Origin: Anaeramoeba ignava BMAN | Taxonomy: Eukaryota; Protista; Anaeramoebae | Direction of reading: 5' to 3' | Length of the DNA stretch: 64,000 nt | Assembly (NCBI GenBank): GCA_028826165.1 | Contig: JAPDFW010000063.1 | Location: 806,001-870,000 of the forward strand | In this document: positions 2,689 through 57,900 of the stretch, one piece after another | Position numbering within the stretch: position 1 is the first letter of the stretch | Layout: every line of letters begins with the position of its first letter | Notes under the pieces: model-generated | Databases searched by the model: none | Told to the model about the DNA's origin: nothing | What the model saw: the letters and a program-made list of their open reading frames with translations, nothing else | Translations under genes and position numbers: made by a program

Positions 2689-4731
2689 TTAATTCACTAG
2701 CTTTTCATAAACTTTCTTCTTGCTATGTGATTTAATTGTGTAAATAATCAAAAACACAAGTATACCCGAATTCCACATAAAAACAACAGAAAGCAAAAGA
2801 CCAGCAGCACCATAACCAAGAACAAGAAGATAAATGAACCAACCATCAATAGCCAATATACCACAAGCAGAAAGAATAGCAGTAGGATTGCGGAGAAAAT
2901 CAGAGAAATTTCTCAAATCACGATCAACAAACGGCAAAGAAACAACAGTCAAAGCAGGGAAAATCATTCCGAGGAAATAAAGGATGAAATAGAAACCAAT
3001 CATTGGATAGAAGGTGACAGAATGATGGATTGCAACACCCCAAATAAAACCAGCACCCCAAGTGTGAACAATCATTGGACCAAGAACAAAGGGAATAAAA
3101 AGAGGGGATAAAACCGCCCACAAAAATATAAACCAAATCGAATTGGGAATTTTGCCAAACTTCCAGATCATAGAGAGAAATTGATGATAGGGGAATTTCC
3201 ACCATTTGGCTTTTCTCTCGCAAAAATTATTCATTTTGTGATCAAATTTTTCATAAGATTTTGTTTTAAGAAGAACAAGACGGAGGATTTTTGGGAGAAT
3301 AACAAAACCGAAGCCGTAGAAGAGATAGAGAATCGTCATCCACGCGATGATTGAGGTTGAGACGTTTTGGTGCTGGATGATCTCGAAGATTCCCTTTCCG
3401 ATCTTTTTTGGGTGGTAAGTAGTCGAGAATGATTGAGATTGCGAAGTGATTATGTTTCCGTTTTTATCCATGAGATGAATAGCAATATCATGCGTCTCTC
3501 CGGCGTAACGGTTTGGATCCCAAGGAGCGGTATACATGAGCGGGACATCGCTGATCTTTGTCATATTGGATGAGACTGTGTTGCCATCAATTTGGCAAGT
3601 AGCTTTGGCGATTGTTGTAGAGTCGAAGCCTATGGGAGAGAAAACAAGCGCGCGGATGTTCTGACTGTACTTGATCTTCTCAAGCGGTTCGCGCGGAGAA
3701 AGATAGCGACAGTCCTTTGGGTTGGTGATCAAAATGATGGGGTCAGTGTGGTCGATGTCGGTGTCGATGAACGAGAAAATATCCTCATCGAAGGCGCAGA
3801 TGCGGAAGGACTTGTGCTTCTTCATGTCGCCGAGACTGAGGTCGAGAACTTTGCCGTCGAGGATGCGTGCCTCTGCCTTTGTGGAGTGCAAATGGCCGTC
3901 AAGAAGAGCGATGATGCGGTATTTTGAAATAAGATCTTTAATTGAGTTTCCTTTACTTGATTTGACAGCTTGAGAAGAAAGCAGCGAAAACGGGAAATGG
4001 TGGATAAGAATAGTCTGGTTGACCTGGTGGTTCTGCTCGGCATCAACAAGAATAGCCTCTAGATCATCCAGAATGTCTTTTGTGATAAAACCGAAAAAAC
4101 CCAACGGCGCAGATACTTGCGGGTAGGTAGTAAAATCTATGGCGATAAAATTATAGGTGCCAAAAATCATATGACGCATACTATTGTAAACTTGAGGTCT
4201 TCCAATGCTATTTAAATATTGCCCCCAGGGAGAATATGTGTAGTAGTAATTGTTATCGCTATATTTTCCTATGATCGCTGATGCATCATGATTTCCTCGA
4301 ATGTCCATCCAATTTGATTGATGATAAAACCCTGATTGCTTCAGTGTGTTCGCGTATGTTTCCCATTCTTCTTCGTTGGGATGGTTCATAAAAATTCCCC
4401 GTTTGTTCGCTTTATCGTCCGTTATATCGCCACTGTGGATCACAAAAGAAGGATCAAAAGCGCGCGCGAAATCGTTGCAAAATGTACTGAAATGCTTCTC
4501 GCGCGTTGAGACATACTTGCTGATGTGTGTGTCGCTTACTTGCATGAAGTAGAACAGTCGATCCGTTCCGTTCCCAAATGTCGCTTCTTTTTTCACTTGA
4601 TATCCTAAATCAAAATCGTCGATTTTCTTCGTCTGTTTGTACGTTACTGGCGCAAATACGTTGATTAGAATTGTAATTATTATCACAAAATGAAAGAAGA
4701 AATCCCGGCAAATTTGAAAGTGTAATTTCAT
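2689..4731 (-). CDS. TMEM62: TMEM62-like metallophosphoesterase membrane protein (intronless, 680 aa)
   Basis: N-terminal TM segment; calcineurin-like motifs SDTHIS, GDITD, RGNHD, HHFP, GHLH; Ig-like region with ILITNPKD and YTAPWDP; C-terminal multi-TM region. Confidence 0.88.
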   Translation of the reverse strand: MKLHFQICRDFFFHFVIIITILINVFAPVTYKQTKKIDDFDLGYQVKKEATFGNGTDRLFYFMQVSDTHISKYVSTREKHFSTFCNDFARAFDPSFVIHSGDITDDKANKRGIFMNHPNEEEWETYANTLKQSGFYHQSNWMDIRGNHDASAIIGKYSDNNYYYTYSPWGQYLNSIGRPQVYNSMRHMIFGTYNFIAIDFTTYPQVSAPLGFFGFITKDILDDLEAILVDAEQNHQVNQTILIHHFPFSLLSSQAVKSSKGNSIKDLISKYRIIALLDGHLHSTKAEARILDGKVLDLSLGDMKKHKSFRICAFDEDIFSFIDTDIDHTDPIILITNPKDCRYLSPREPLEKIKYSQNIRALVFSPIGFDSTTIAKATCQIDGNTVSSNMTKISDVPLMYTAPWDPNRYAGETHDIAIHLMDKNGNIITSQSQSFSTTYHPKKIGKGIFEIIQHQNVSTSIIAWMTILYLFYGFGFVILPKILRLVLLKTKSYEKFDHKMNNFCERKAKWWKFPYHQFLSMIWKFGKIPNSIWFIFLWAVLSPLFIPFVLGPMIVHTWGAGFIWGVAIHHSVTFYPMIGFYFILYFLGMIFPALTVVSLPFVDRDLRNFSDFLRNPTAILSACGILAIDGWFIYLLVLGYGAAGLLLSVVFMWNSGILVFLIIYTIKSHSKKKVYEKLVN

Positions 4732-4799: not shown

Positions 4800-7462
4800 A
4801 TTTATTTTTTTAATTAGAAAGTATTATTTTAATAATAAATTTATTAATAAAATATATTTTTAAACCAGTTCTAAATTAAATATTAAATCAAAACTATTAA
4901 GAAATTTAAAATAAATTAAATCAAAATATTTAATAATAAAATATTATTATTTTTTAATTATAAAATATTAATTTAATAATAAATTTATTAATAAAATATA
5001 TTTTTAAATCAGTTCTAAATTAAATATTAAATTAAAACTATTAAAATAAATTAAAATAAATTAAATCAAAATATTTAATAATAAAATATTATTATTTTTA
5101 ATTAAAAAGTATTAATTTAATAATAAATTTATTAATAAATTATATTTTTAAATCAATTCTAAATTAAATATTAAATCAAAACTATTAAAATAAATTAAAA
5201 TAAATTAAATAAAAATATTTAATAATAAAATATTATTATTTTTAATTATAAAGTATTATTTTAATAATAAATTTATTAATAAATTATATTTTTAAATCAA
5301 TTCTAAATTAAATATTAAATTAAAACTATTAAAAATTAAAATAAATTAAATCAAAATATTTAATAACAAAACATTATTATTTTTAATTATAAAATATTAA
5401 TTTAATAATAAATTTATTAATAAAATATATTTTTAAATCAATTCTAAATTAAATATTAAATCAAAACTATTAAAAATTTAAAATAAGTTAAATCAAAATA
5501 TTTAATAATAAAATATTATTATTTTTAATTATAAAGTATTAATTTAATAATAAATTTATTAATAAAATATATTTTCAAATCAATTCTAAATTAAATACTA
5601 AATCAAAACTATTAAAATAATTAAAATAAATTAAATAAAAATATTTAATAACAAAATAATATTATTTTTTAATTAAAAGTATTAATTTAATAATAAATTT
5701 ATTAATAAATTATATTTTTAAATCAATTCTAAATTAAATATTAAATTAAAACTATTAAAATAATTAAAATAAATTAAATAAAAATATTTAATAATAAAAT
5801 ATTATTATTTTTAATTAAAAGTATTATTTTAATAATAAATTTATTAATAAATTATATTTTTAAATCAATTTCAAATTAAATATTAAATTAAAACTATTAA
5901 AAATTAAAATAAATTAATTCAAAATATTTAATAATAAAATATTATTATTTTTTAATTAAAAGTATTATTTTAATAATAAATTTATTAATAAAATATATTT
6001 TTAAATCAATTCTAAATTAAATATTAAATTAAAACTATTAAAATAAATTAAAATAAATTAAATCAAAATATTTAATAATAAAATATTATTATTTTTATTT
6101 AGAAAATATTATTTTAATAATAAATTTATTAATAAAATATATTTTTAAATCAAATTTTAAATTAAATACTAAATTAAAACTATTAAAAATTTAAAATAAG
6201 TTAAATCAAAATATTTAATAATAAAATATAAATATTTTTAATTATAAAATATTAATTTAATAATAAATTTATTAATAAATTATATTTTTAAATCAATTCT
6301 AAATTAAATATTAAATCAAAACTATTAAGAAATTTAAAATAAATTAAATCAAAAATATTTAAAAATAAAATATTATTATTTTTTTAATTAAAAAGCATTA
6401 TTTTAATAATAAATTTATTAATAAAATATATTTTTAAATCAATTCTAAATTAAGTATTAAATTAAAACTATTAAAATAAATTAAAATAAATTAAATCAAA
6501 ATATTTAATAATAAAAATTATTATTTTTATTTAAAAATATTATTTTAATAATAAATTTATTAATAAATTATATTTTTAAATCAATTCTAAATTAAATATT
6601 AAATTAAAACTATTAAAATAAATTAAAATAAATTAAATCAAAATATTTAATAATAAAATAATATTATTTTTAATTATAAAATATTAATTTAATAATAAAT
6701 TTATTAATAAATTATATTTTTAAATCAATTCTAAATTAAATATTAAATTAAAACTATTAAAATAAATTAAAATAAATTAAATCAAAAATATTTAATAATA
6801 AAATATTATTATTTTTAATTATAAAATATTAATTTAATAATAAATTTATTAATAAATTATATTTTTAAATCAATTCTAAATTAAATATTAAATCAAAACT
6901 ATTAAAATAAATTAAAATAAATTAAATCAAAATATTTAATAATAAAAATATTATTATTTTTAATTATAAAGTATTATTTTAATAATAAATTTATTAATAA
7001 ATTATATTTTTAAATCAATTCTAAATTAAATATTAAATTAAAACTATTAAAATAAATTAAAATAAATTAAATAAAAATATTTAATAATAAAATATTATTA
7101 TTTTTTAATTAGAAAGTATTAATTTAATAATAAATTTATTAATAAATTATATTTTTAAATCAATTCTAAATTAAATATTAAATTAAAACTATTAAAATAA
7201 ATTAAAATAAATTAAATCAAAATATTTAATAATAAAATATTATTATTTTTTAATTAGAAAATATTAATTTAATAATAAATTTATTAATAAAATATATTTT
7301 TAAATCAATTCTAAATTAAATACTAAATCAAAACTATTAAAATAATTTAAAATAAATTAAATCAAAATATTTAATAATAAAATAATATTATTTTTTAATT
7401 AGAAAATATTAATTTAATAATAAATTTATTAATAAATTATATTTTTAAATCAATTCTAAATT
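4800..7462 (+). repeat. ~144-bp AT-rich tandem satellite, about 18 copies (left array)
   Basis: Marker AAAACTATT recurs at 4894, 5038, 5182, 5326 ... 7189, 7334 (spacing 141-146 bp). Confidence 0.95.
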
Positions 7463-7690
7463 GAAGATTTGAATAATATTAAATAAAAAAAAAGGAAAAA
7501 AAAGGAAAAAAAAAAGGTGAATTCGAAAATCAATTAAATTCAATTCAAAAAAAGAAAAAGAAAACAAAAAGAAATTAAATTAAAATTAAATTTAAAATTT
7601 TGATCAAAAAAATAAAACAAAAATAATCAACAATAATTAAAAACAATTATTTTTATTTTATATTCATTTATTTATTTATTTATTTATTGA

Positions 7691-7727
<37 letters not shown>

Positions 7728-7888
7728 AAAAAAAAGGAAAAAAGGAAAAAAGGAAAAAAAGGAATTACACTTGGAATTGAAAATAAAAGAAAAAAAAAAA
7801 GAAAAAAAATTTATTTTTCATTTCAATTTTTGATTTTTAAATTTATTTTATTTTTTTTAAAAAAAAAAAAAGATTTATTTTATCAAAA

Positions 7889-10216
7889 ATGACTGGAATT
7901 GTTAAAACAAATCAACAAACAGAGAAATTAGAATTAACTCAAGAAGCAGAAAATTTTTTCAATTCAATTAATAAAGAAAAACCAATTCATATTCTTTCAA
8001 TAATTGGTGTAACAAGAGAAGGAAAATCAACATTATTAAATTGTATTTCTTCACTTTATGAAAAAAAGAATTCAGAAACAAAATTTGAAATTTTTGGAGG
8101 AGCAGATGCTTGTACTTCAGGAATTTGGGTAAAACAAATTGAATTAAATGATAAAATAATTTTATTAATTGATTCAGAAGGAACAAATAAAGGAAATGAT
8201 GTTATTACTCAAAAAATAATTACTTTAGTTTCTCTTTTATCTTCAGTTTTAATAATTAATTTTTCAAAAACTATCAAAAATGATACTTTCAAATCTTTAA
8301 GTGGAATTCAATCAATAGCAAAAATTATCAAAAATCCTAAACGAGGAAATGTTCCTGAAAGTCCTTTTCCTAATTTAATTTTTTTATTAAGAGATTCATT
8401 ACCAGATGGATTAACTATCGATAAAACACCATGTAATGCAGAAGAATATTTAAATTATCAACTTGATCCTGTTAATCATATATCAGATGGTTTGTCTCCA
8501 ATAGCAGTAACGATTAATTCATTTTACAAAAAGAAACAATTATTTGCATTTAAAAAACCATCTGATAATCAAATTCAACAATTCAAAAATGGAAATTTTG
8601 AATGTAATTCTGATTCTGAATTTGATCAAAAAACAAATGAATTATTTCAATTTTTAGAAAATGGATTTTTAGAACCTAAATTGATTAATAGAAATCAATG
8701 TCAAGGATCAGATTTATTTCTTTATCTTAAGTTTTTAATTGAAGGAATTAATGAAGAAAAAGTTGATATTCCAATGATTTCAGATTATATTGAACAAAGT
8801 AAAGCAAAACAAATTTTAAAACCATTTCTTGAAAGAATTCAACAAATTGTTAAAGAATTAATTGAAAATTTGGAAAAAATTGAAGATAATGAAGAATTAA
8901 AAAGAATTAATTATGAAAAAGAATTTGAATCAAAAATAAAACCAATCAAACAAGAATATGAAAAAGAAATTCAATTTCTTAATCAAAAAGCAAAACAAAT
9001 TGGAATAAATGAACTTGAAAATTCAATTAAACAATCTTCAAATTATATTAAAGAAAAAATGGAATTCTTAATAAAGCAAGCAGAAGAAGTTGAATCAAGA
9101 CAAATGAATTTATATTCACAAAAGTTTAATACTTTTTTACAAAATATCCATTTACAAGAAAATTCACTTCAAAATGAAATTTCAAATTGTCAAAATCTAA
9201 ATCAAATTTCACAAATTTCACAAAAAATTCAAAATTTTGAAAAAGGAATAAATGAACAAATTCAAGAAATTAAAAATTCAACTTCACAATATATTAAAAA
9301 AGTTCAAGAAGAAATTAAAAAACAAACACAAAATTTCCTTAATCAAAATATTGGAAAATTAGAAAAAACAAGAATACAAAAAGAACAACAAATTCGAGCA
9401 AGAATTCAACAAGAAATTCAACAAGCTAATCAAAATATTCAATATTTAATAAATAATTTACAACAACAAGCTAATTCATATAAACAACAAATCACTAATT
9501 GTAAAGATGAATCAACATGGAGAAACTTAATTTCATCCTTTCGAAGTTCATTAGATTCAATTAGAAATTCAAATTCAAATCAATTTTCACAATTTACTCA
9601 ATCAATGTGTCAAGAAGCTAAAAATCTTATTTACAATTTAAATCAAAGCCAAAATTCAATTATTTCAACTTTACAAAATTGGGCTGGATCATTAAAACCT
9701 CCAGAACCACCAAAACCACAAGAACCTCCAAAGCCAGATCTAGAGAAAGGTGCAAAAATTGTTCGAAACACTCGTTGGACAGGGAATGCCCAATGGGCTA
9801 GGTTTTCGAATAATGGAAAAACAGTGAAAGATCTTGCAACAAAAAAAGATGATCCACTTTATCCAGTTCTTGGTTCAGAAATAATTTCAGGAAATGTTTA
9901 TTGTCATTATCGAGTTAGAATTGAGGAAGATAAACATTTTTATATTGGAGTTTGTCGACCTGGAGAAACAGTATGGACAAATTGTTGGGTTTATCGAGTA
10001 GATTGGAAAGATTTACATCCAGGTCAATTAGGAACTATGTATATGAATACAGAAAACAAAAAAGGAGATATTATGGAAGTTTACATTAACATGCAAGATA
10101 AAACTTTGAGTTTTGGAAAGAATGGAAGTAATAATGGAATTGCTTTCACAAATTTACCTTCACAAGTTTGTTTATGTGCTGTCATTACAACAAACAGACA
10201 GCTCACACTCCTTTAA
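7889..10216 (+). CDS. GBP/atlastin-family large GTPase + coiled coil + Pro-rich linker + C-terminal SPRY/B30.2-like domain (copy 1, intronless, 775 aa)
   Basis: G1 GVTREGKS, G2 CTSGIW, G3 DSEG, G4 LLRD (GBP/atlastin signature); Q/E/K helical stalk; SPRY-like FSNNGKTV...FYIGVC...KKGDIMEVYINMQDKTLSFGKNG...IAFTNLP. Confidence 0.88.
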   Translation: MTGIVKTNQQTEKLELTQEAENFFNSINKEKPIHILSIIGVTREGKSTLLNCISSLYEKKNSETKFEIFGGADACTSGIWVKQIELNDKIILLIDSEGTNKGNDVITQKIITLVSLLSSVLIINFSKTIKNDTFKSLSGIQSIAKIIKNPKRGNVPESPFPNLIFLLRDSLPDGLTIDKTPCNAEEYLNYQLDPVNHISDGLSPIAVTINSFYKKKQLFAFKKPSDNQIQQFKNGNFECNSDSEFDQKTNELFQFLENGFLEPKLINRNQCQGSDLFLYLKFLIEGINEEKVDIPMISDYIEQSKAKQILKPFLERIQQIVKELIENLEKIEDNEELKRINYEKEFESKIKPIKQEYEKEIQFLNQKAKQIGINELENSIKQSSNYIKEKMEFLIKQAEEVESRQMNLYSQKFNTFLQNIHLQENSLQNEISNCQNLNQISQISQKIQNFEKGINEQIQEIKNSTSQYIKKVQEEIKKQTQNFLNQNIGKLEKTRIQKEQQIRARIQQEIQQANQNIQYLINNLQQQANSYKQQITNCKDESTWRNLISSFRSSLDSIRNSNSNQFSQFTQSMCQEAKNLIYNLNQSQNSIISTLQNWAGSLKPPEPPKPQEPPKPDLEKGAKIVRNTRWTGNAQWARFSNNGKTVKDLATKKDDPLYPVLGSEIISGNVYCHYRVRIEEDKHFYIGVCRPGETVWTNCWVYRVDWKDLHPGQLGTMYMNTENKKGDIMEVYINMQDKTLSFGKNGSNNGIAFTNLPSQVCLCAVITTNRQLTLL

Positions 10217-10741
10217 AAATTTTTTTCTTTTTCTAATCCTTTTTTTCCAATTCTTCTTTCAAAAAATTTTTTTTTTCATCAAACAAAATTTTACAATCTT
10301 CATTTCAATAAAACCAAAAAATCAAAATGTTGTTATTTTTCATTTTATTTGAATAATATTAAAAAAAAAAGGAAAAAAAAAAGGTGAATTCGAAAATCAA
10401 TTAAATTCAATTCAAAAAAACAAAAAGAAAACAAAATTAAATTAAATTAAATTAAATTTAAAATTTTGATCAAAAAAATAAAACAAAAATAATCAACAAT
10501 AATTAAAAACAATTTTTATTTTTATTTTATATTTATTTATTTATTTATTTATTGATCATTATTATTATTATTATTATTAAAAAAAGGAAAAAAGGAAAAA
10601 AAGGAAAAAAAAGGAATTACACTTGGAATTGAAAATAAAAGAAAAAAAAAAAGAAAAAAAATTTATTTTTCATTTCAATTTTTGATTTTTAAATTTATTT
10701 TATTTTTTTTAAAAAAAAAAAAAAGATTTATTTTATCAAAA

Positions 10742-13112
10742 ATGACTGAAATTGTTAAAACAAATCAACAAACAGAGAAATTAGAATTAACTGAAGAAGC
10801 AGAAAATTTTTTCAATTCAATTAATAAAGAAAAACCAATTCATATTCTTTCAATAATTGGTGTAACAAGAGAAGGAAAATCAACATTATTAAATTGTATT
10901 TCTTCACTTTATGAAAAAAAGAATTCAGAAACAAAATTTGAAATTTTTGGAGGAATAGATGCTTGTACTTCAGGAATTTGGGTAAAACAAATTGAATTAA
11001 ATGATAAAATAATTTTATTAATTGATTCAGAAGGAACAGATAAAGGAAATGATGTTATTACTCAAAAAATAATTACTTTAGTTTCTCTTTTATCTTCAGT
11101 TTTAATAATTAATTTTTCAAAAATTATCACAAATTATACTTTCAAATCTTTAAGTGGAATTCAATCAATAGCAAAAATTATCAAAAATCCTAAACAAGGA
11201 AATGTTCCTGAAAGTCCTTTTCCTAATTTAATTTTTTTATTAAGAGATTTATTATCAAGTGGATTAACTATCGATAAAAAACCATGTAATGCAGAAGAAT
11301 ATTTAGATTATCAACTTGATCCTGTTAATCATATATCAGATGGTTTGTCTCCAATAATAATGACTATTAATTCATTTTACAAAAAGAAACAATTATTTGC
11401 ATTTAAAAAACCATCTGATAATCAAATTCAACAATTCAAAAATGGAAATTTTGAATGTAATTCTGATTCTGAATTTGATCAAAAAACAAATGAATTATTT
11501 CAATTTTTAGAAAATGGATTTTTAGAACCTAAATTGATTAATGGAAATCAATGTCAAGGATCAGATTTATTTCTTTATCTTAAGTTTTTAATTGAAGGAA
11601 TTAATGAAGAAAAAGTTGATATTCCAATGATTTCAGATTATATTGAACAAAGTAAAGCAAAACAAATTTTAAAACCATTTCTTGAAAGAATTCAACAAAT
11701 TGTTAAAGAATTAATTGAAAATTTGGAAAAATTGAAGATAATGAAGAATTAAAAAGAATTAATTATAAAAAGAATTTGAATCAAAAATAAAACCAATCAA
11801 ACAAGAATATGAAAAAGAAATTCAATTTCTTAATCAAAAAGCAAAACAAATTGGAATAAATGAACTTGAAAATTCAATTAAACAATCTTCAAATTATATT
11901 AAAGAAAAAATGGAATTCTTAATAAAACAAGCAGAAGAAGTTGAATCAAGACAAATGAATTTATATTCACAAAAGTTTAATACTTTTTTACAAAATATCC
12001 ATTTACAAGAAAATTCACTTCAAAATGAAATTTCAAATTGTCAAAATTTAAATCAAATTTCACAAATTTCACAAAAAATTCAAAATTTTGAAAAAGGAAT
12101 AAATGAACAAATTCAAGAAATTAAAAATTCAACTTCACAATATATTAAAAAAGTTCAAGAAGAAATTAAAAAACAAACACAAAATTTCCTTAATCAAAAT
12201 ATTGGAAAATTAGAAAAAACAAGAATACAAAAAGAACAACAAATTCGAGCAAGAATTCAACAAGAAATTCAACAAACTAATCAATATATTCAATGCTTAA
12301 TAAATAATTTACAACAACAAGCTAATTCATATAAACAACAAATCACTAATTGTAAAGATGAATCAACATGGAGAAACTTAATTTCATCCTTTCGAAGTTC
12401 ATTAGATTCAATTAGAAATTCAAATTCAAATCAATTTTCAAAATTTACTCAATCAATGTGTCAAGAAGCTAAAGATCTTATTTACAATTTAAATCAAAGC
12501 CAAAATTTGATTATTTCCAATTTGGAAAACTCTTTTGAATCCCCTCAACTCTCTCAACCTCCCAACTCCTCTAATCTTCCTAATCCTCCTAAGCCACCAA
12601 AAGATCCAGAACCCCCAAAAGGAAAAAAAGACCCTGTCTCACGAGGGAAAAAAATTGTTCGAAACACTCATTGGATTGGGAATCCCGAATGGAATCAAAT
12701 TTCGAATAATGGAAAAACAGTGAAAGATCTTGCAACAAAAAAAGATGATCCACTTTATCCAGTTCTTGGTTCAGAAATAATTTCAGGAAATGTTTATTGT
12801 CATTATCGAGTTAGAATTGAGGAAGATAAACATTTTTATATTGGAGTTTGTCGACCTGGAGAAACAGTATGGACAAATTGTTGGGTTTATCGAGTAGATT
12901 GGAAAGATTTACATCCAGGTCAATTAGGAACTATGTATATGAATACAGAAAACAAAAAAGGAGATATTATGGAAGTTTACATTAACATGCAAGATAAAAC
13001 TTTGAGTTTTGGAAAGAATGGAAGTAATAATGGAATTGCTTTCACAAATTTACCTTCACAAGTTTGTTTATGTGCTGTCATTACAACAAATAGACAGCTC
13101 ACACTCCTTTAA
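10742..13112 (+). pseudogene. GTPase-coiled-coil-SPRY copy 2; interrupted by two 1-nt deletions (real pseudogene or assembly indels)
   Basis: Near-identical to copy 1. One A is missing from the A-run at ~11727-11731 (GAAAAAATT becomes GAAAAATT) and one G at ~11766 (TATGAAAAA becomes TATAAAAA). This joins ORFs 10682-11752 and 11910-13112. Confidence 0.75.
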
Positions 13113-13144
13113 AAATTTTTTTTAATCAAAGAAATTCAAAACCA

Positions 13145-14170
13145 TATTTAATAAATAAAATAATATTATTTTTTAATTAAAAAGTATTATTTTAATAATA
13201 AATTTATTAATAAATTATATTTTTAAATCAGTTATAAATTAAATATTAAATCAAAACTATTAAAATAAATTAAAATAAATTAATTCAAAATATTTAATAA
13301 TAAAATATTATTATTTTTTAATTATAAAGTATTAATTTAATAATAAATTTATTAATAAATTATATTTTTAAATCAATTCTAAATTAAATATTAAATTAAA
13401 ACTATTAAAATAAATTAAAATAAATTAAATCAAAATATTTAATAACAAAATATTATTATTTTTTAATTATAAAGTATTAATTTAATAATAAATTTATTAA
13501 TAAATTATATTTTCAAATCAATTCTAAATTAAATATTAAATTAAAACTATTAAAATAAATTAAAATGAATTAAATCAAAATATTTAATAATAAAATAATA
13601 ATATTTTTATTTAGAAAGTATTAATTTAATAATAAATTTATTAATAAAATATATTTTTAAATCAATTCTAAATTAAATATTAAATCAAAACTATTAAAAT
13701 AAATTAAAATGAATTAAATCAAAATATTTAATAATAAAATATTATTATTTTTAATTAGAAAGTATTATTTTAATAATAAATTTATTAATAAAATATATTT
13801 TTAAATCAATTTTAAATTAAATATTAAATTAAAACTATTAAAAATTTAAAATAAGTTAAATCAAAATATTTAATAATAAAATAATATTATTTTTTAATTA
13901 AAAAGTATTAATTTAATAATAAGTTTATTAATAAATTATATTTTTAAATCAATTCTAAATTAAATATTAAATTAAAACTATTAAAATAAATTAAAATAAA
14001 TTAAATCAAAATATTTAATAACAAAATATTAATATTTTTTAATTAGAAAGTATTAATTTAATAATAAATTTATTAATAAATTATATTTTTAAATCAATTC
14101 TAAATTAAATATTAAATTAAAACTATTAAAATAAATTAAAATGAATTAAATCAAAATATTTAATAATAAA
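13145..14170 (+). repeat. Same ~144-bp satellite, about 7 copies (right array), same orientation as left array
   Basis: AAAACTATT marker at 13257, 13402, 13547, 13691, 13835, 13978, 14123. Confidence 0.95.
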
Positions 14171-14218
14171 AAAAGAAAAGGAAAAGAAAAGAAATCAAAA
14201 ATTAAATCAATTTTTTAT

Positions 14219-14767
14219 TTAAAAAAAAATTTGATATTTTTTCCAACAAATAAGTTTTTTTTCTTGAATACAATCATTAACCCATTTACTTTCAATAATT
14301 GGAATATTTTTTTCATTAAAGAAATTCAAATGATCCAAAAAATTTTGACAAGAACTATTTTTGACTTGATCAAAATTCTGATCTAGAATTAAAACAAAAG
14401 AATTTTGAAAATTTGTTTTCATTTTGAAGTCATTAAGAGAATAAGCTGAGCCTCCATAAACATTAATTAATTTTGAATGCACTCTTCTTAATAAAATCAA
14501 TGTCTGTTTTTGTTGTTTAAATTCTTCTTTTTCTTGTTTTTGTTCAAATTCTGGGAAAACTAAAAAAGAATAATTTGACAATAATTTTTGTTTTTGATTT
14601 TGATTTTGTTTGTTTTCTGGCTCTTTTCTTATTTGTCTTCTTTTCTTTTCTTGTATTATTTTTTTTTCAATTTTTTTATTAGGCAAAATTCTTTCTTTTT
14701 TGTTTTCTTTTTCTTTTTTTGGATTTGAATTTGAATTTGAATTTGATTTTCTTTTTCTTGAATTCAT
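14219..14767 (-). CDS. Small nuclear protein with basic N-terminus and one BRCT domain (182 aa)
   Basis: LLSNYSFLV...KLINVYGG...IPIIESKWVNDCIQEKKLI matches the BRCT pattern (GG turn, W-x-x-x-C helix). Confidence 0.7.
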   Translation of the reverse strand: MNSRKRKSNSNSNSNPKKEKENKKERILPNKKIEKKIIQEKKRRQIRKEPENKQNQNQKQKLLSNYSFLVFPEFEQKQEKEEFKQQKQTLILLRRVHSKLINVYGGSAYSLNDFKMKTNFQNSFVLILDQNFDQVKNSSCQNFLDHLNFFNEKNIPIIESKWVNDCIQEKKLICWKKYQIFF

Positions 14768-15549: not shown

Positions 15550-17547
15550 ATGTCAGGAATTCTACAATTATTGATCGCAGCAGCACAATTAGAAAAAGGA
15601 CAAAAAACAAATACAAATTCAAACCCAATTAAAAACCCTATTAAAAACCCAATTCAAAATCCAATTCAAAATCCAATTCAAAATCCAATTCAAAATCCAA
15701 TTCAAAAAGAAATTAAAAATTCCAACAAAACAAATCCATTTGATTTAGAAACACAAAAAGAAATTCAAAAAGAAATTCAAAAAGAAATTCAAAAAGAAAT
15801 TAAAAAAGAAATTAAAAAAGAAATTAAAAAAGAAATTCAAACTAATTTTACTTTTAATGAGCAAAAAGAAGAACAACAACATAATACCCTTTTTGATAAA
15901 GAAAAACTTAATAAAAATATTCTTAATAATAATAATAAACAAGGAAATAATGAATTAAAATCAAAAAAAAGGGTAAAACAAGAAATTATAAAAGAAACAA
16001 AAAAACAAAAAAAAAAAGAAAAAAAACAAAAAAAAAAGCAAAAAAAACAAAAACCAAAAAAACCTTCAATTTACGAGGGTTTATCATGTTCTCATTGTAA
16101 TATAACAAAAACTCCTCAATGGAGACATGTACCGACATGGTATCGACAAAATTTCAATGGAGAATGGTTATGCAACAAGTGTTATTCACATCTTTTATAT
16201 CACAAATCGTTGCCGGAAATTCCAAAAATAACGGAAATTGAAAAATCAAATTTGCAAGAAAAATTGATTAGTTCAGATTCTGTTCCGTTACTCAAAACAC
16301 AACTTTTCAAGGATATAAAAATACTTGTTAATCCTGGTTGCATTCCTACTGTTTTCAAAGATAAATCGACATCTGGATGGCTTCAAAAAACGGTTTCGCA
16401 ATTGATCCAAATTCATGGAGGCACTGTTTGTGAGATGGATAATGTCGATCCACTTGAAAATCATATTGTAATTATTCTTTCAGATTCTCCTCTTAAAAAT
16501 CCTCGTCTTCTTGCTACAAATTTTGAGCTTGTTCGCGCTCTGGCTCGAGGTTATCCTCTTGCTTCGAGTTCGTGGATTAATGATTCTATTGATGCAAAAC
16601 AAATTCTTGATCTCCAAAAATATTCTTTAACGAAAAATTCTTCACTTTTGGATCAAAATTTCAAATTTTTTGCTAATTCAAAAATGTTTTTGATCGGTGA
16701 GTTTTTTTTGATTAATAAATGGAAGCCTGTTTTGGTAGATGCTGGTGTTGAAATTGTTTCTGATTCTTCAAAAGCTGATTATATTTTTGAGCCTTTAAAT
16801 TCTCAAAACGAAAATGAAAATGAAAATGAAAATCAATTAGAAAATGAAAATGAAAATGAAAATGAATTAGAAAATGAAAATGAAAATGAAAATGAAAATG
16901 AAAATGAAAATGAAAATGAAAATGAAAATGAAAATGAAAATGAATTAGAAAATGAAAATGAAAATGAAAATGAATTAGAAAATCAAAATCAAAATGAAAA
17001 TGAAAATGAATTAGAAAATGAAAATGAAAATGAAAATGAAAATGAATTAAAAAATCAAAATCAAAGAATTAAAAATGAAAATGAATTAAAAATGAAAATC
17101 GAAATCAAAATCAAAATCAAAATCAAAATCAAAATGAAAATAAAAATCAAAATCAAAATGAATTAAAAAATGAAAATGAAAATGAAAATCAAAATCAAAA
17201 TCAAAATGAATTAAAAAATGAAAATGAAAATGAAAATGAAAATGAAAATCAATCAAAAAAATGAAAATGAAAACGAAAATGAAAATGAAAATGAAAATGA
17301 ATTAAAAAATGAAAATAAAAATCAAAATCAAAATCAAAATCAAAATCAAAATGAATTAAAAAATCAAAATCAAAATCAAAATGAAAATCAAAATCAAAAT
17401 CAAAATCAAAATCAAAATAAAAATCAATTAAAAAATCAATTAAAAAATCAATCTAAAAATCAATCAAAAAATCAATCAAAAAATCAAAATAAAAAAATGA
17501 ATCAATTTGACTTCCTTCAGAAAATTATTGATACTCAAATTAAGTAA
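15550..17547 (+). CDS. GATA-type zinc finger + tandem BRCT protein; C-terminal (NE/NQ)n tract carries frame breaks
   Basis: CSHC...TPQWR...LCNKC finger; BRCT1 LFKDIKILV...HGG...ALARGYPLASSSWINDS; BRCT2 FFANSKMFL...WKPVLVDAG. ORF 17218-17547 is in the same frame and ends with a helix (FDFLQKII), so indels in the repeat are likely. Confidence 0.75.
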
Positions 17548-19444: not shown

Positions 19445-19464
19445 AGAAAATGAAAACAACAAAA

Positions 19465-21335
19465 AACAATTTCAAAATCAATTTCAAAAATCAATTCCAA
19501 AATCAATTCTAAAATCAATTTCAAAAACAATTTCAAAATCAATTTTAAAATCAATTTAAAAATCAATTTAAAAATCAATTTCAAAATCAATTTCAAAAAT
19601 CAATTTCAAAATCAATTTCAAAATCAATTTCAAAATCAATTTCAAAATCAATTTCAAAATCAATTTCAAAATCAATTTCAAAATCAATTTCAAAAATCAA
19701 TTTCAAAATCAATTTCAAAATCAATTTAAAAATCAATTTAAAAATCAATTTCAAAATCAATTTAAAAATCAATTTCAAAAATCAATTTAAAAATCAATTT
19801 AAAAATCAATTCTAAAAATCAATTTCAAAAATCAATTTCAAAATCAATTTCAAAATCAATTTCAAAAATCAATTCTAAAATCAATTTTAAAATCAATTAA
19901 AAATCAATTTCAAAATCAATTCTAAAATCAATTTAAAAATCAATTTCAAAATCAATTTAAAAATCAATTTCAAAATCAATTTCAAAATCAATTTCAAAAA
20001 TCAATTTAAAAATCAATTTAAAAATCAATTTCAAAAATCAATTTCAAAATCAATTTCAAAAATCAATTTCAAAAATCAATTTCAAAATCAATTTCAAAAT
20101 CAATTTCAAAAATCAATTTCAAAAATCAATTTCAAAAATCAATTTCAAAATCAATTTCAAAATCAATTTCAAAATCAATTTAAAAATCAATTTCAAAATC
20201 AATTTCAAAATCAATTTAAAAATCAATTTAAAAATCAATTTAAAAATCAATTTAAAAATCAATTTAAAAATCAATTTCAAAATCAATTTAAAAATCAATT
20301 TAAAAATCAATTCAAAAATCAATTTCAAAAATCAATTTCAAAATCAATTTCAAAATCAATTTCAAAATCAATTTAAAAATCAATTTCAAAATCAAATCAA
20401 AAATCAATTTAAAAATCAATTCTAAAATCAATTTCAAAATCAATTTCAAAAATCAATTTCAAAAATCAATTTCAAAATCAATTTAAAAATCAATTTCAAA
20501 ATCAATTTAAAAATCAATTTCAAAAATCAATTTAAAAATCAATTTCAAAATCAATTTCAAAAATCAATTTAAAAATCAATTTAAAAATCAATCCAAAATT
20601 CAATTTAAAAATCAATTTAAAAATCAATTTCAAAATCAATTTCAAAATCAATTTCAAAAATCAATTTCAAAATCAATTTCAAAAATCAATTTCAAAAATC
20701 AATTTAAAAATCAATTTCAAAATCAATTTAAAAATCAATTTCAAAAATCAATTTCAAAATCAATTTCAAAATCAATTTCAAAATCAATTTCAAAAATCAA
20801 TTTAAAAATCAATTTAAAAATCAATTTCAAAAATCAATTTCAAAAATCAATTTCAAAATCAATTTAAAAATCAATTTCAAAAATCAATTTCAAAATCAAT
20901 TTCAAAATCAATTTCAAAATCAATTTAAAAAATCAATTTCAAAATCAATTTAAAAATCAATTTCAAAATCAATTTCAAAATCAATTTAAAAATCAATTTA
21001 AAAATCAATTTAAAAATCAATTTCAAAATCAATTTCAAAATCAATTTCAAAATCAATTTCAAAAATCAATTCAAAAATCAATTTAAAAATCAATTTCAAA
21101 AATCAATTTCAAAAATCAATTTCAAAAATCAATTTCAAAATCAATTTCAAAAATCAATTTCAAAATCAATTTCAAAATCAATTTCAAAATCAATTTCAAA
21201 AATCAATTTCAAAATCAATTTCAAAAATCAATTTCAAAAATCAATTTCAAAATCAATTTAAAAATCAATTTCAAAATCAAAATCAAAATCAATTTAAAAA
21301 TCAATTTCAAAACAATTTTAAAATCAATTTCAAAT
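19465..21335 (+). repeat. 12/13-bp minisatellite (AAAATCAATTTC)n, ~1.9 kb
   Basis: Directly visible; G-free on + strand. Confidence 0.95.
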
Positions 21336-24303: not shown

Positions 24304-26695
24304 ATGGATGAAAAAATTAAAAATGAAATGACAAAAATGTATTAAAAAAAAATAATAAAAAGAAATTAAAAAAAAATTTATTAAATTAAAAAAATAAAAA
24401 GAATGAAATTAAATCAAGCAGATGGAGTTATAATGACTGATAAAAACGGACTTTGTTTAGCTAGAAGTGGATATTTTGAATCTGATAATCTTTCTGGTTT
24501 TATTCATTCAATTTCTCAACATTCAGCTGAATTAGAAAATTTACATTTTTCTAAATCAAAAAATAATCAAAATAAACAAGAAATGGTTTTTTTAACTGAT
24601 AATTTTCAAAATGAAGATTTTTTGGAAAATGAAACTTCTTTTATAACTTGTATTGAAACAAATACAAGGTTTTTTATCAAAAAAAACAAACAAAATTATT
24701 ATTAATTTATTAATATTATTTTATTATTTATAACTTGTATTGAAACAAATACAAGGTTTTTTATCAAAAAAAACAAACAAAATTATTATTAATTTATTAA
24801 TTTTATTTTATTATTTATAACTTGTATTAAAATAAATACAAGGTTTTTTATCAAAAAAAACAAACAAAATTAATATTATATTATTAATTTTATTTTATTA
24901 TTTATAACTTGTATTGAAATAAATACAAGGTTTTTTATCAAAAAAATCAAACAAAATTGTTATTATTTTATTAATATTATTTTATTATTAAAATAAATAC
25001 AAGGTTTTTATCAAAAAAAACAAACAAAATTATTATTAATTTATTAATATTATTTTATTATTTATAACTTGTATTGAAACAAATACAAAGTTTTTTATCA
25101 AAAAAAACAAACAAAATTAATATTATTTTATTAATTTTATTTTAATATTTATAACTTGTATTGAAATAAATACAAGGTTTTTTATCAAAAAAAACAAACA
25201 AAATTAATATTATTTTATTAATATTATTTTAATATTTATAACTTGTATTAAAATAAATACAAGGTTTTTTTATCAAAAAAACAAACAAAATTATTATTAA
25301 TTTATTAATATTATTTTATTATTTATAACTTGTATTGAAATAAATACAAGGTTTTTTATCAAAAAAAACAAACAAAATTAATATTAATTTATTAATATTA
25401 TTTTATTATTTATAACTTGTATTGAAATAAATACAAGGTTTTTTATCAAAAAAAACAAACAAAATTATTATTAATTTATTAATTTTATTTTATTATTTAT
25501 AACTTGTATTGAAATAAATACAAGGTTTTTTATCAAAAAAACAAACAAAATTATTATTATTTTATTAATTTTATTTTATTATTTATAACTTGTATTGAAA
25601 TAAATACAAAGTTTTTTATCAAAAAAAACAAACAAAATTAATATTATTTTATTAATTTTATTTTATTATTTATAACTTGTATTAAAATAAATACAAGGTT
25701 TTTTATCAAAAAAAACAAACAAAATTATTATTATTTTATTAATATTATTTTATTATTTATAACTTGTATTAAAATAAATACAAGGTTTTTTATCAAAAAA
25801 ACAAACAAAATTATTATTATTTTATTAATATTATTTTATTATTTATAACTTGTATTGAAATAAATACAAAGTTTTTATCAAAAAAACAAAAATTATTTTA
25901 AATTTTATTTTATTATTTATAACTTGTATTAAAACAAATACAAGGTTTTTATCAAAAACAAACAAAATTATTATTATTTTATTAATTTTATTTTATTATT
26001 TATAACTTGTATTAAAATAAATACAAAGTTTTTTTTATATCAAAAATATTATTTTATTAAAACAAAATTACAAAATCAAAAACAAATTTATTATTTTATT
26101 ATTTTATTTTATTTATAACTTGTATTAAAATAAATACAAGGTTTTTTATCAAAAAAACAAACAAAATTATTATTAATTTTATTAATATTATTTTATTATT
26201 TATAACTTGTATTGAAATAAATACAAAGTTTTTTTATCAAGAAAAAACAAACAAAATTATTATAAATTTATTAATTTTATTTTATTATTTATAACTTGTA
26301 TTAAAATAAATACAAGGTTTTTTATCAAAAAAAACAAACAAAATTAATATTAATTTTATTAATATTATTTTAATATTTATAACTTGTATTGAAATAAATA
26401 CAAAGTTTTTTATCAAAAAAAACAAACAAAATTAATATTATTTTATTAATATTATTTTATTATTTATAACTTGTATTGAAATAAATACAAAGTTTTTTAT
26501 CAAAAAAAACAAACAAAATTATTATTATTTTATTAATTTTATTTTATTATTTATAACTTGTATTGAAATAAATACAAGGTTTTTTATCAAAAAAAACAAA
26601 CAAAATTATTATTAATTTATTAATTTTATTTTAATAGGAAAATTTTTATAAATCAACAAGATAAAGGAACTATCGCTTTCTCAAAAAAAAATTAA
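24304..26695 (+). CDS. LAMTOR5: Ragulator subunit LAMTOR5/HBXIP. Exons 24304-24338, 24402-24668, 26638-26695
   Basis: MDEKIKNEMTKIMKLNQADGVIMTDKNGLCLARSG...ITCIETNTRKIFINQQDKGTIAFSKKN matches the LAMTOR5 roadblock pattern. Confidence 0.85.
24640..26630 (+). repeat. ~87-bp tandem repeat, about 23 copies, forming LAMTOR5 intron 2; unit = exon end + donor + intron body
   Basis: Unit TTTATAACTTGTATTGAAAYAAATACAAG|GTTTTTTATCAAAAAAAACAAACAAAATT...; the first copy overlaps the coding exon. Confidence 0.95.
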
Positions 26696-54980: not shown

Positions 54981-57900
54981 ATGGCAAACAATTTTGAATT
55001 AAAAAACCAAATAAATTCTTTGGAAGCTTTTGATGAAAATGAATTTAATGATCCTTCCAATTTTCAAGAATTTACAACTCAAAATTTAAATCAAAATGAA
55101 AATGAAAATGAAAATGAAAATGAAAATGAAAATGAAAATGAAAAACCGAATGGCGTTCAAAATGGTAAAATATTATTTAAAAATTAAAAAATTAAGAAAA
55201 AATTAAGAAAAAATTAAGAAAACGAAAACAATTTTAATTAAAATTTTAACTGTTTTTTTTTTGGGGATGAAAAATTTAATAAACAAAAAACAAACAAAAA
55301 ATACAAAAATAAAATCTAAAACAAATAACAAAATCTAAAACAAAATAAAATCTAAAACAAAAAACAAATAACAAAATCTAAAATTATTTCCCATTTTTTT
55401 GGTTATTCAATTAACCACCTTTTTTAAACATCAAATTGATCAAAAAAGGGAATGGAAATAAAATAATAAATAAAATAATAAATAAAATAATAAATAAAAT
55501 TATAAATTAAATTATAAATTAAATTATAAATAAAATTATAAAATAAACTTATAAATAAAATTATAAATAAAATTATAAATTAAATTATAAATTAAATTAT
55601 AAATTAATTTATAAATAAAATTATAAATAAAATAATAAATAAAATTATAAATAAAATAATAAATAAAATTATAAATAAAATTATAAATTAAATTATAAAT
55701 AAAATTATAAATAAAATTATAAATAAATTATAAATAAAATTATAAATTAAATTATAAATAAAATTATAAATTAAATTATAAATAAAATTATAAATAAAAT
55801 TATAAATAAAATTATAAATAAAATTATAAATAAAATTATAAATAAATTTATAAATAAAATTATAAATTAAAAATAATAAATTAAATTATAAATTAAATTA
55901 TAAATTAAATAATAAATTAAATTATAAATAAAATTATAAAAATAAAATATAAATTAAATTATAAATAAAATTATAAATTAAATTATAAATTAAATTATAA
56001 ATTAAATTATAAATAAAATTATAAATAAAATTATAAATAAAATTATAAATAAAATTATAAATAAAATTATAAATAAAATTATAAATAAAAATAATAAATA
56101 AAATTATAAATAAAATTATAAATAAAATTATAAATAAAATTATAAATAAAATTATAAATAAAATTATAAATTAAATTATAAATAAACTTATAAATTAAAT
56201 TATAAATTAAATTATAAATTAAAATATAAACAAAAATTATAAATAAAATTATAAATAAAAAATTATAAATAAAATAATAAATAAAATTATAAATAAAATT
56301 ATAAATAAAATTATAAATAAAATTATAAATAAAATTATAAATAAAATTATAAATTAAATTATAAATTAAATTATAAATTAAAATATAAACAAAATTATAA
56401 ATAAAATTATAAATAAAATTATAAATAAAATAATAAATAAAATTATAAATAAAATTATAAATAAAATTATAAATAAAATTATAAATAAAAATTATAAATA
56501 AAATTATAAATAAAATTATAAATAAAATTATAAATTAAAATTATAAATTAAATTATAAATAAAATTATAAATAAAATTATAAATAAAATTATAAATAAAA
56601 TTATAAATAAAATTATAAATAAAATTATAAATAAAATTATAAATAAAATTATAAATAAAATTATAAATAAAATAATAAATAAAATTATAAATAAAATTAT
56701 AAATAAAATTATAAATTAAATTATAAATTAAATTATAAATTAAAATAATAAATTAAATTATAAATAAAATTATAAATAAAATTATAAATTAAATTATAAA
56801 TTAAATTATAAATTATATTCATATTTATACTAATTATTGTTTTAATAGAAAATATTTTGGCTCAAAATGGAATTTCAATGAAATCTCATGTAACTTCAAT
56901 ATCAGGTTCACCAACTGAAAAACAATTGAATATTAATGATTTTATTGAAGAAGAACTTGATGCTAATTTCTCAGATTCTGGAGATCCTTTTGAATTTTTC
57001 GAACAAGAAATTCAAGGAAGAATTCTTCAAAATTTATTCTTTTTATCTGATGATTCTGATTGGACTGTTGATCAAGAAAACTCTAAAGATGGAAAAATAA
57101 AACTTTCAAGTTCAGAAATTAACAATAATGCATCAATGTTTAGAACTAATTTTCTTGGGAAAGGTATGAATAAAAATTAATATAAAAATTAATATAAAAA
57201 TTAATATAAAAATCAATATAAAAATTAATATAAAAATCAATATAAAAATTAATATAAAAATCAATATAAAAATTAATATAAAAATTAATATAAAAATCAA
57301 TATAAAAAACTATATAAAAATCAATATAAAAATTAATATAAAAATTAATATAAAAATCAATATAATTTAAAGAATTTGATAATATTGTTATTAATCATGC
57401 GGAAGAAGGTTATATTGTTATTTCTATTCTTACATTAAAAGAGGGAAAACAAATTAACTATCAAATTCTAATGACAACAAAAAAAGAAACTAAATTTTTC
57501 TCTTTTAATAAAAAAGATATGAAAATTTCTAATGGATGTTGTCAAGGAACTCCATTAAGAAAAATTATTCAAAAAGTTGATAATACTTTTTATAATCTTC
57601 CTTTTGATTATTGTGAAGAACAAAAAACAGATGAAAATGATTTATTAGCAATTGAAGATTCAACAGTAAATTTAAATATAATCAAAAAAATTGATTTTAA
57701 TTTTAATTTTAATATTTATTTAATTTTAATTTTAATTTTAATTTTTATTTTAATATTTAATTTTAATATTTAATTTTAATATTTAATTTTAATTTTATAA
57801 ATGAATTTTAAATTGAATTTTAAATTGAATTTTAATTAAGTCGCTTCATAAATTTAAATTTGGAATCATATTTTTCCGTCAAAATCTTCGAACTGAAGAA

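Follow-up and report, generated by a model that had tools for sequence, protein, structure and literature searches.

Why do two nearly identical genes for large GTPases stand between two arrays of one and the same satellite, and do these repeats take any part in the evolution of the genes? The question is posed by positions 4802–14171 of a 64,000-nucleotide stretch of DNA (the window, to whose first letter all positions refer) from the anaerobic amoeba Anaeramoeba ignava BMAN (NCBI GenBank assembly GCA_028826165.1, contig JAPDFW010000063.1, positions 806,001 to 870,000 of the forward strand), where a left array is followed by a first gene and its 133-bp tail, then by 0.4 kb of upstream sequence leading into a second gene, and finally by a right array. 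An earlier note, made from the sequence of this stretch, had taken the two genes for members of a family of immune sensor-effectors in which recombination between the satellites on either side reshuffles both the number of copies and their sequence. Our analysis leads to another answer, which we hold to be probable, namely that a tandem pair of lineage-specific genes, each joining a guanylate-binding protein (GBP) GTPase to a SPRY domain, interrupts (7470–13127) a single array of an ordinary satellite found throughout the genome.

The nature of the genes is best seen in gene 1, an intact and intronless open reading frame (ORF) on the plus strand (7889–10216) whose 775-residue product consists of a GBP-type GTPase domain (residues ~1–300), a helical region (~330–590), a proline-rich linker (~600–619) and a SPRY domain (~620–775), as judged from the reading frame, Pfam, PDB matches, Foldseek and an Atlas model. 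Gene 2 (10742–13112, plus strand) is its tandem copy and, by alignment, carries two 1-bp deletions. The GBP domain (PF02263) scores 77–79 bits against a Pfam cut-off of 21.1; the GTPase part matches the PDB chains of GBP5, GBP1 and GBP2 (E 5e-11 to 2e-9) and aligns, by way of its Atlas model, to GBP clusters. Both copies possess a P-loop with an internal arginine (GVTREGKS), the switch-I threonine (ACTSGIW), DSEG and LLRD, the latter being the RD motif that, as expected of the GBP family, replaces N/TKxD. The helical region can be aligned with that of a homolog from Anaeramoeba flamelloides up to about residue 496, and there is no CaaX box in either copy, both of which end in RQLTLL. Word-index protein searches with the whole protein, its GTPase part and its SPRY part returned the self-match only, and profile and sequence searches of the contigs found two copies of the GBP-SPRY family in the genome and no more. 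The genome has two further places with a PF02263 match (C119:148164-148484 and C113:127070-127396), both weak, extending from P-loop to switch II and lying inside very long, unrelated ORFs (frames of 2449 and 928 residues) of another large-GTPase family. The published family table, in which the pair is listed under PANTHER PTHR10751, likewise holds exactly two adjacent BMAN GBP genes, M0811_06831 and M0811_06832, and the family is small, with 2–3 genes each, in all three Anaeramoeba genomes (PMC11550330).

At the other end of the proteins, the SPRY profile (PF00622) is matched with 36.5 and 36.8 bits against a cut-off of 26.3 over profile positions 2–108 of 121, the match ending about 13 positions before the end of the Pfam model, and the same part matches the HERC1 SPRY chain with an E of 0.006. 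When an AlphaFold model of this part is submitted to Foldseek, every top match is a SPRY domain, and an independent, alignment-free Atlas model reaches template-modelling scores of 0.73–0.77 to SPRY clusters, so that the predicted fold agrees with the earlier suggestion of a C-terminal SPRY domain. The same cannot be said of the suggestion that this is a B30.2-like recognition module. No PRY family that would precede the SPRY segment turns up in Pfam at E up to 1, and residues ~620–775 are matched best, in sequence and in fold, by the SPRY-only proteins HERC1, RanBP9/10, Ash2L and DDX1 and by the SPRY2 domain of RyR; for these reasons the C-terminus is assigned to the old SPRY-only type and not to the B30.2 (PRY-SPRY) type of TRIM5 and pyrin. 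SPRY domains occur at 22 places in the genome itself, all remotely similar (best match E 9e-4), and no donor of the domain is visible there.

How unusual the combination is may be gauged from a HMMER search with the GTPase domain against 1.84 billion representative sequences, which gave 865 hits, the best 150 of which were scanned for added domains. None of these 150 carries a SPRY domain; PX, fn3, ankyrin and EF-hand modules are the additions found among them, and GBP-SPRY fusions may still occur elsewhere, the remaining 715 hits included. A full-text literature search returned no description of a GBP that carries SPRY or B30.2, and the main text of the A. ignava genome paper names neither GBPs nor SPRY (PMC11550330). 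The genes were therefore already annotated, and the fusion is real and apparently undescribed: in these lineage-specific large GTPases of the GBP family, within the dynamin superfamily, a proline-rich linker followed by SPRY stands where GBPs usually have their tail. Gene 1, moreover, appears to be expressed, since its exact 775-residue protein is on record in the EukProt A. ignava set, which we take to be a transcriptome because a sister record bears a Trinity/TransDecoder name; the protein on record fits an intronless gene 1, and the 90%-identity cluster of gene 1 also includes an A. ignava Trinity ORF from EukProt. These transcript-derived ORFs are complete, running from ATG to stop.

The surroundings of the two genes are equally telling. 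The satellite unit, of about 4% G+C, measures 145 bp by Tandem Repeats Finder (TRF), which assigns 18.6 copies to the left array (4802–7469) and 7.1 copies to the right one (13144–14171), both in the plus orientation, in good agreement with the unit of about 144 bp and the 18 and 7 copies counted before. No other 145-bp array lies within the window, as had also been stated, the weak local matches being repeats of 5–12 bp and one of 36 bp. Outside the window the picture changes, and the tie between satellite and gene family that the shuffling proposal presupposed is lost: two units of the left array, used as a query, have at least 467 matches in the genome, the 150 matches listed fall on at least 24 contigs, and at five other loci sampled the arrays flank actin, small-heat-shock-like and other genes. 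The satellite is an ordinary, genome-wide, AT-only filler of intergenic spacers.

The two flanks of the genes are nevertheless special in their mutual likeness. Left and right flank are 96–97% identical across 5.7 kb, which equals the likeness of units within one array, whereas no other sampled array exceeds 90.6% identity with them, and the arrays on either side of genes at the other sampled loci are only 74–83% alike although they lie as little as 0.2–1.7 kb apart. The left array, by junction alignment, ends at unit position 80 (7469), and the right one, whose start this alignment extends to 13128, resumes at unit position 106, leaving 25 bp of the unit missing; the earlier description of a break in mid-unit holds for the left array, although the gap is of 25 bp rather than about 50. 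Because the flanks are one variant, nearly in phase and unlike the arrays that flank other sampled genes, the cassette most likely interrupts a single array with a loss of 25 bp, in keeping with the earlier impression that it had landed in the array, and either one cassette or one gene that was later duplicated would have been inserted by an event at the DNA level. That the genes were there first, with arrays growing or being homogenised later on both sides and coming into near phase by coincidence, is unlikely in our view; AT-only arrays of 145-bp units do occupy many intergenic spacers and a phase match of this kind has a chance of about 0.18, but against such a history stand flanks more alike across 5.7 kb than the two-sided arrays of other sampled loci are at a fraction of the distance. 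In whichever order genes and arrays came together, alignment reveals no satellite between the two copies, so that their duplication did not come about by exchange between the flanking arrays; with the cassette ends free of terminal inverted repeats and no second locus of the cassette in genome searches, nothing shows the arrays moving or amplifying the genes.

Two further ideas about the satellite were considered and rejected. One was that it forms an array of introns and 3-nucleotide microexons: TTAG-AAA-GTAT occurs in 5 of the 21 units scored, neither G is present in another 5 of 21, and the slot always reads AAA. As the Gs are not conserved, the unit may be related, in decayed form, to intron/3-nucleotide-exon arrays. 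The other was a satellite-bounded dispersal of further genes; the actin loci turn out to be large segmental duplications that carried the arrays along, C23:12000-21999 and C75:414000-423999 being ~96% identical over 10 kb and C1:211000-220999 being 88–92% identical. These duplications span several genes and account for the array variants that the sampled loci have in common. With a length of only 75 kb, contig C23 may represent an alternative haplotype. A family of small ORFs (~150–160 residues, starting MSI...PSLF) lies between satellite arrays at C126:726000-735999 and C67:280000-289999, and the array variants adjoining them are 94% identical between these two loci.

The comparison of the two copies bears on their history. 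The duplicated unit of ~2.85 kb begins where the left array stops, at the first base past 7469, and runs on for about a dozen bases beyond the stop codon; it includes non-coding upstream parts (7470–7888 and 10350–10741) that are near-identical by alignment, while the genes themselves are ~97–99% identical outside one patch. Beyond its first dozen or so bases, the 133-bp, non-satellite tail that follows gene 1 (10217–10349) has no equivalent after gene 2. Sequence searches of the genome found neither a close copy of this tail nor a donor for the upstream region or for either version of the patch, the only matches being of low complexity at ~70–80% identity. The differences are distributed most unevenly along the coding sequence. 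In the GTPase domain (codons 1–300) there are 21 substitutions, 19.5 of them non-synonymous (non-synonymous divergence, dN, 0.028; synonymous divergence, dS, 0.008); the middle part (codons 301–589) has 8 substitutions and the two 1-bp deletions (dN 0.007, dS 0.020); the patch (codons 590–639) combines heavy divergence (dN 0.36, dS 0.77) with indels of 36 and 9 bp; and the 136 codons of the SPRY core (640–775) differ by one silent change (dN 0, dS 0.012). The patch, 150–190 bp in length, spans the end of the helical region, the linker and the first SPRY strand, lies at 9657–9803 in gene 1 and, with the additional 36-bp and 9-bp stretches, at 12508–12699 in gene 2, and has both its boundaries inside coding sequence. 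In its three ungapped sub-blocks the proportion of silent sites that differ (pS 0.31–0.59) is at or above that of replacement sites (pN), and, as silent divergence is not exceeded by replacement divergence, the patch would seem to have an older or a foreign history rather than to have been driven apart by selection in place. The simplest reading of the near identity elsewhere is a recent duplication, or an ongoing gene conversion that halts at the indel-rich patch; the patch would either have escaped conversion, its 36-bp and 9-bp indels acting as a block, or have been imported.

At the GTPase sites that differ, neither copy is systematically degenerate. The amino-acid differences at 8102–8103, 8186 and 8397–8406 (codons 72, 100 and 170–173) adjoin the switch-I, DxxG and RD motifs; this clustering beside the G motifs is suggestive, with numbers too small to test.

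The state of gene 2 is less clear than that of gene 1. As compared with gene 1 it lacks one base at ~11726 and another at ~11766, its frame meets a stop codon at 11750–11752, and the annotated NCBI product has 336 residues; farther downstream another frame is open from 11910 to 13112 and codes for helical region, linker and SPRY domain. Two intronless tandem GBP-SPRY genes had been claimed for this locus, and this stands for the architecture and for the single ORF of gene 1 but not for gene 2, which in this assembly is not open. Rescue by an intron was considered and set aside: GT..AG excisions that would reopen the frame can be drawn (e.g. 11652–11772), but A-rich sequence abounds in sites of this kind, and gene 1 reads through the very same ones.

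It is here that the observations weighing against our reading of the locus have to be brought together, among them a second transcript-derived protein. P0153, from the EukProt A. ignava set, is a complete ORF of 790 residues that is open through the frameshift region and that carries the copy-2 patch, which must therefore be transcribed; its length is that of gene 2 with the two deletions taken out. At the sites that distinguish the copies it is a mosaic of four segments in the order 1/2/1/2, following copy 1 at sites 3–268 and 568/579 and copy 2 at 513–519 and 590–639, with one of the switches falling between sites 34 nucleotides apart. P0153 may have arisen as a chimera of the assembler, may represent a real recombinant or allele, or may point to mis-polishing in the assembly of gene 2, and, because it is open there and mosaic, gene 2 may in reality be intact or a recombinant allele may exist. 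Both the frameshifts of gene 2 and the copy number are read from the assembly sequence. The position aligned to Ser73, the catalytic serine of human GBP1, is alanine in the gene pair, and GBP_C (PF02841), present in 62 of the 150 nearest relatives with a GBP domain, is undetected by Pfam at E up to 1, on which grounds the enzymology may differ. Confidence in the AlphaFold model of the SPRY part is low, with a mean predicted local distance difference test (pLDDT) of 57 on an alignment of 13 SPRY-domain sequences, and a single-sequence prediction gives a pLDDT of 40. The phase match of the arrays, taken by itself, is weak at the chance level given above, and what we say of function is drawn purely by analogy.

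The first of these points gives substance to an alternative that we rate as possible though less likely than not, in which both copies are intact and expressed, the deletions of gene 2 being long-read assembly errors or a strain polymorphism, and in which the two isoforms are distinguished chiefly by the linker and the first strand of SPRY. A complete transcript-derived ORF with the copy-2 patch and the length of a deletion-free gene 2 speaks for this alternative; one of the two deletions is located within an A run, gene 2 and not gene 1 has the commonest residue of the family at several of the GTPase sites that differ, and the published assembly was built from Nanopore and short-read sequencing (PMC11550330). 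Yet P0153 agrees with copy 1 at 16 of 16 differing GTPase sites and is thus not simply the transcript of gene 2, the NCBI model of gene 2 is truncated at 336 residues, and the second deletion removes a G outside any homopolymer run. A bolder extension, whereby both copies are live, are kept distinct amid gene conversion as alternative isoforms of linker and SPRY entry strand, and P0153 is a real recombinant, would make of the pair an actively recombining two-gene GBP-SPRY sensor that, in view of the host's biology, may be directed at phagosomes or at the symbiosome; we regard this as distinctly unlikely.

With these data in hand we may return to the proposal of a sensor-effector immune family, shuffled by the flanking satellites in the manner of the trypanosome 70-bp repeats and diversified under selection by bacteria, symbionts or viruses. 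GBPs are central to cell-autonomous defence in animals and are now known as immune effectors in plants as well. Bacterial symbionts are housed by the host in symbiosomes (PMC11550330). The excess of non-synonymous changes in the GTPase domain (19.5 of 21, dN/dS ~3.3) and the mosaic nature of P0153 are of the kind that such a proposal calls for. The remaining evidence points the other way and makes the proposal, in our estimation, highly improbable. A family of two copies, in a genus with 2–3 GBP genes in each of three genomes, offers no archive of paralogs; the satellite, which adjoins unrelated genes and occurs on at least 24 contigs, is absent from between the copies; the SPRY cores, where recognition would presumably take place, are separated by that one silent change in 136 codons; and the non-synonymous excess does not reach significance (p = 0.058 against neutrality), with dS exceeding dN in the patch. 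The earlier note had itself named three results that would refute it: a satellite spread over many loci with no link to the family and a family of two copies only are what we have found, whereas the third, a C-terminus that does not fold as SPRY, did not occur.

The preferred reading, that of a lineage-specific GBP-SPRY pair within one array of a common satellite, carries a number of implications. By analogy with other GBPs, GTP binding would drive the pairing of GTPase domains and an assembly through the helical stalk, and the SPRY domain, taking the place of a lipid anchor, would aim this assembly at a protein ligand; phagosomes, the symbiosome, microbes and host structures are all candidates for the target. 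To our knowledge, almost nothing is known of the roles of GBPs in protists, and a GBP engine coupled to a protein-recognition domain would represent a new way of aiming the GBP machine, in an amoeba that keeps bacteria in a dedicated membrane compartment, while providing a concrete protein for localisation and pull-down experiments. The locus is also a clean example of a gene cassette inside a single satellite array, which is useful for thinking about gene movement in an extremely AT-rich genome. The weight of the case is limited by there being two copies only, one of them possibly dead, and the link to immunity or to symbionts is one of analogy.

As for the wider setting, the window has a G+C content of 20.3% (79.7% A+T), close by the 80.65% A+T of the published A. 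ignava genome (PMC11550330), and tandem repeats abound in it (304 TRF rows). The block of arrays and cassette is bordered on the left by a TMEM62-like phosphoesterase gene (2689–4731, minus strand) and on the right by ORFs with BRCT domains (14219–14767 and 15550–17166). Other micro- and minisatellites in the window include (ATTTTA)n of 0.7 kb at 1–732, a 19/28-bp array of 1.3 kb at 1377–2691, a 12-bp array of 1.9 kb at 19462–21334, an 87/174-bp array of 2 kb at 24640–26633 and a 12-bp array of 1.4 kb at 55456–56813.

Set against known systems, the arrangement recalls the trypanosome VSG 70-bp repeats in that AT-rich repeats adjoin genes, and differs from them in several respects: an archive of variants is lacking, the second copy is not preceded by the repeat, conversion boundaries do not coincide with repeats, and the repeat is not specific to the family. 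Among the 145-bp satellites of A. ignava itself, the locus stands out by having one variant on both sides of the cassette, near in phase, which was not seen at the five other loci sampled. The proteins resemble human GBP1, GBP2 and GBP5 in being large GTPases with a P-loop arginine, a switch-I threonine, DxxG and RD motifs and a long helical region thereafter, and depart from them in lacking a Pfam GBP_C domain and a CaaX box (the end being LTLL), in the alanine in place of Ser73 and in the C-terminal SPRY domain; unlike the interferon-inducible GBPs of vertebrates, they belong to an organism in which we know of no interferon system. The nearest relative among the 865 hits is a GBP of A. flamelloides BUSSELTON2 (P0002, GCA_027625915.1), with 36% identity over the GTPase domain, which is close to the mean identity of 37.3% between orthologs of A. 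ignava and A. flamelloides (PMC11550330). This homolog (652 residues; JANTQA010000047.1, 20630792-20641036) ends not in a SPRY domain but in a low-complexity tail rich in Gly, Ser and Tyr, the 4 kb downstream of it contain no SPRY ORF, and it too has a GBP neighbour, a divergent second gene (538 residues) on the opposite strand. The disordered tails of plant GBPLs resemble the Gly/Ser/Tyr tail of A. flamelloides and, together with the FIIND-CARD of fish GBPs, represent other C-terminal modules of the family. The protist GBP-PX clusters and the fusions to fn3, ankyrin and EF-hand domains follow the same principle as the A. ignava pair, that of a conserved GTPase engine joined to an exchangeable C-terminal module for aiming or signalling.

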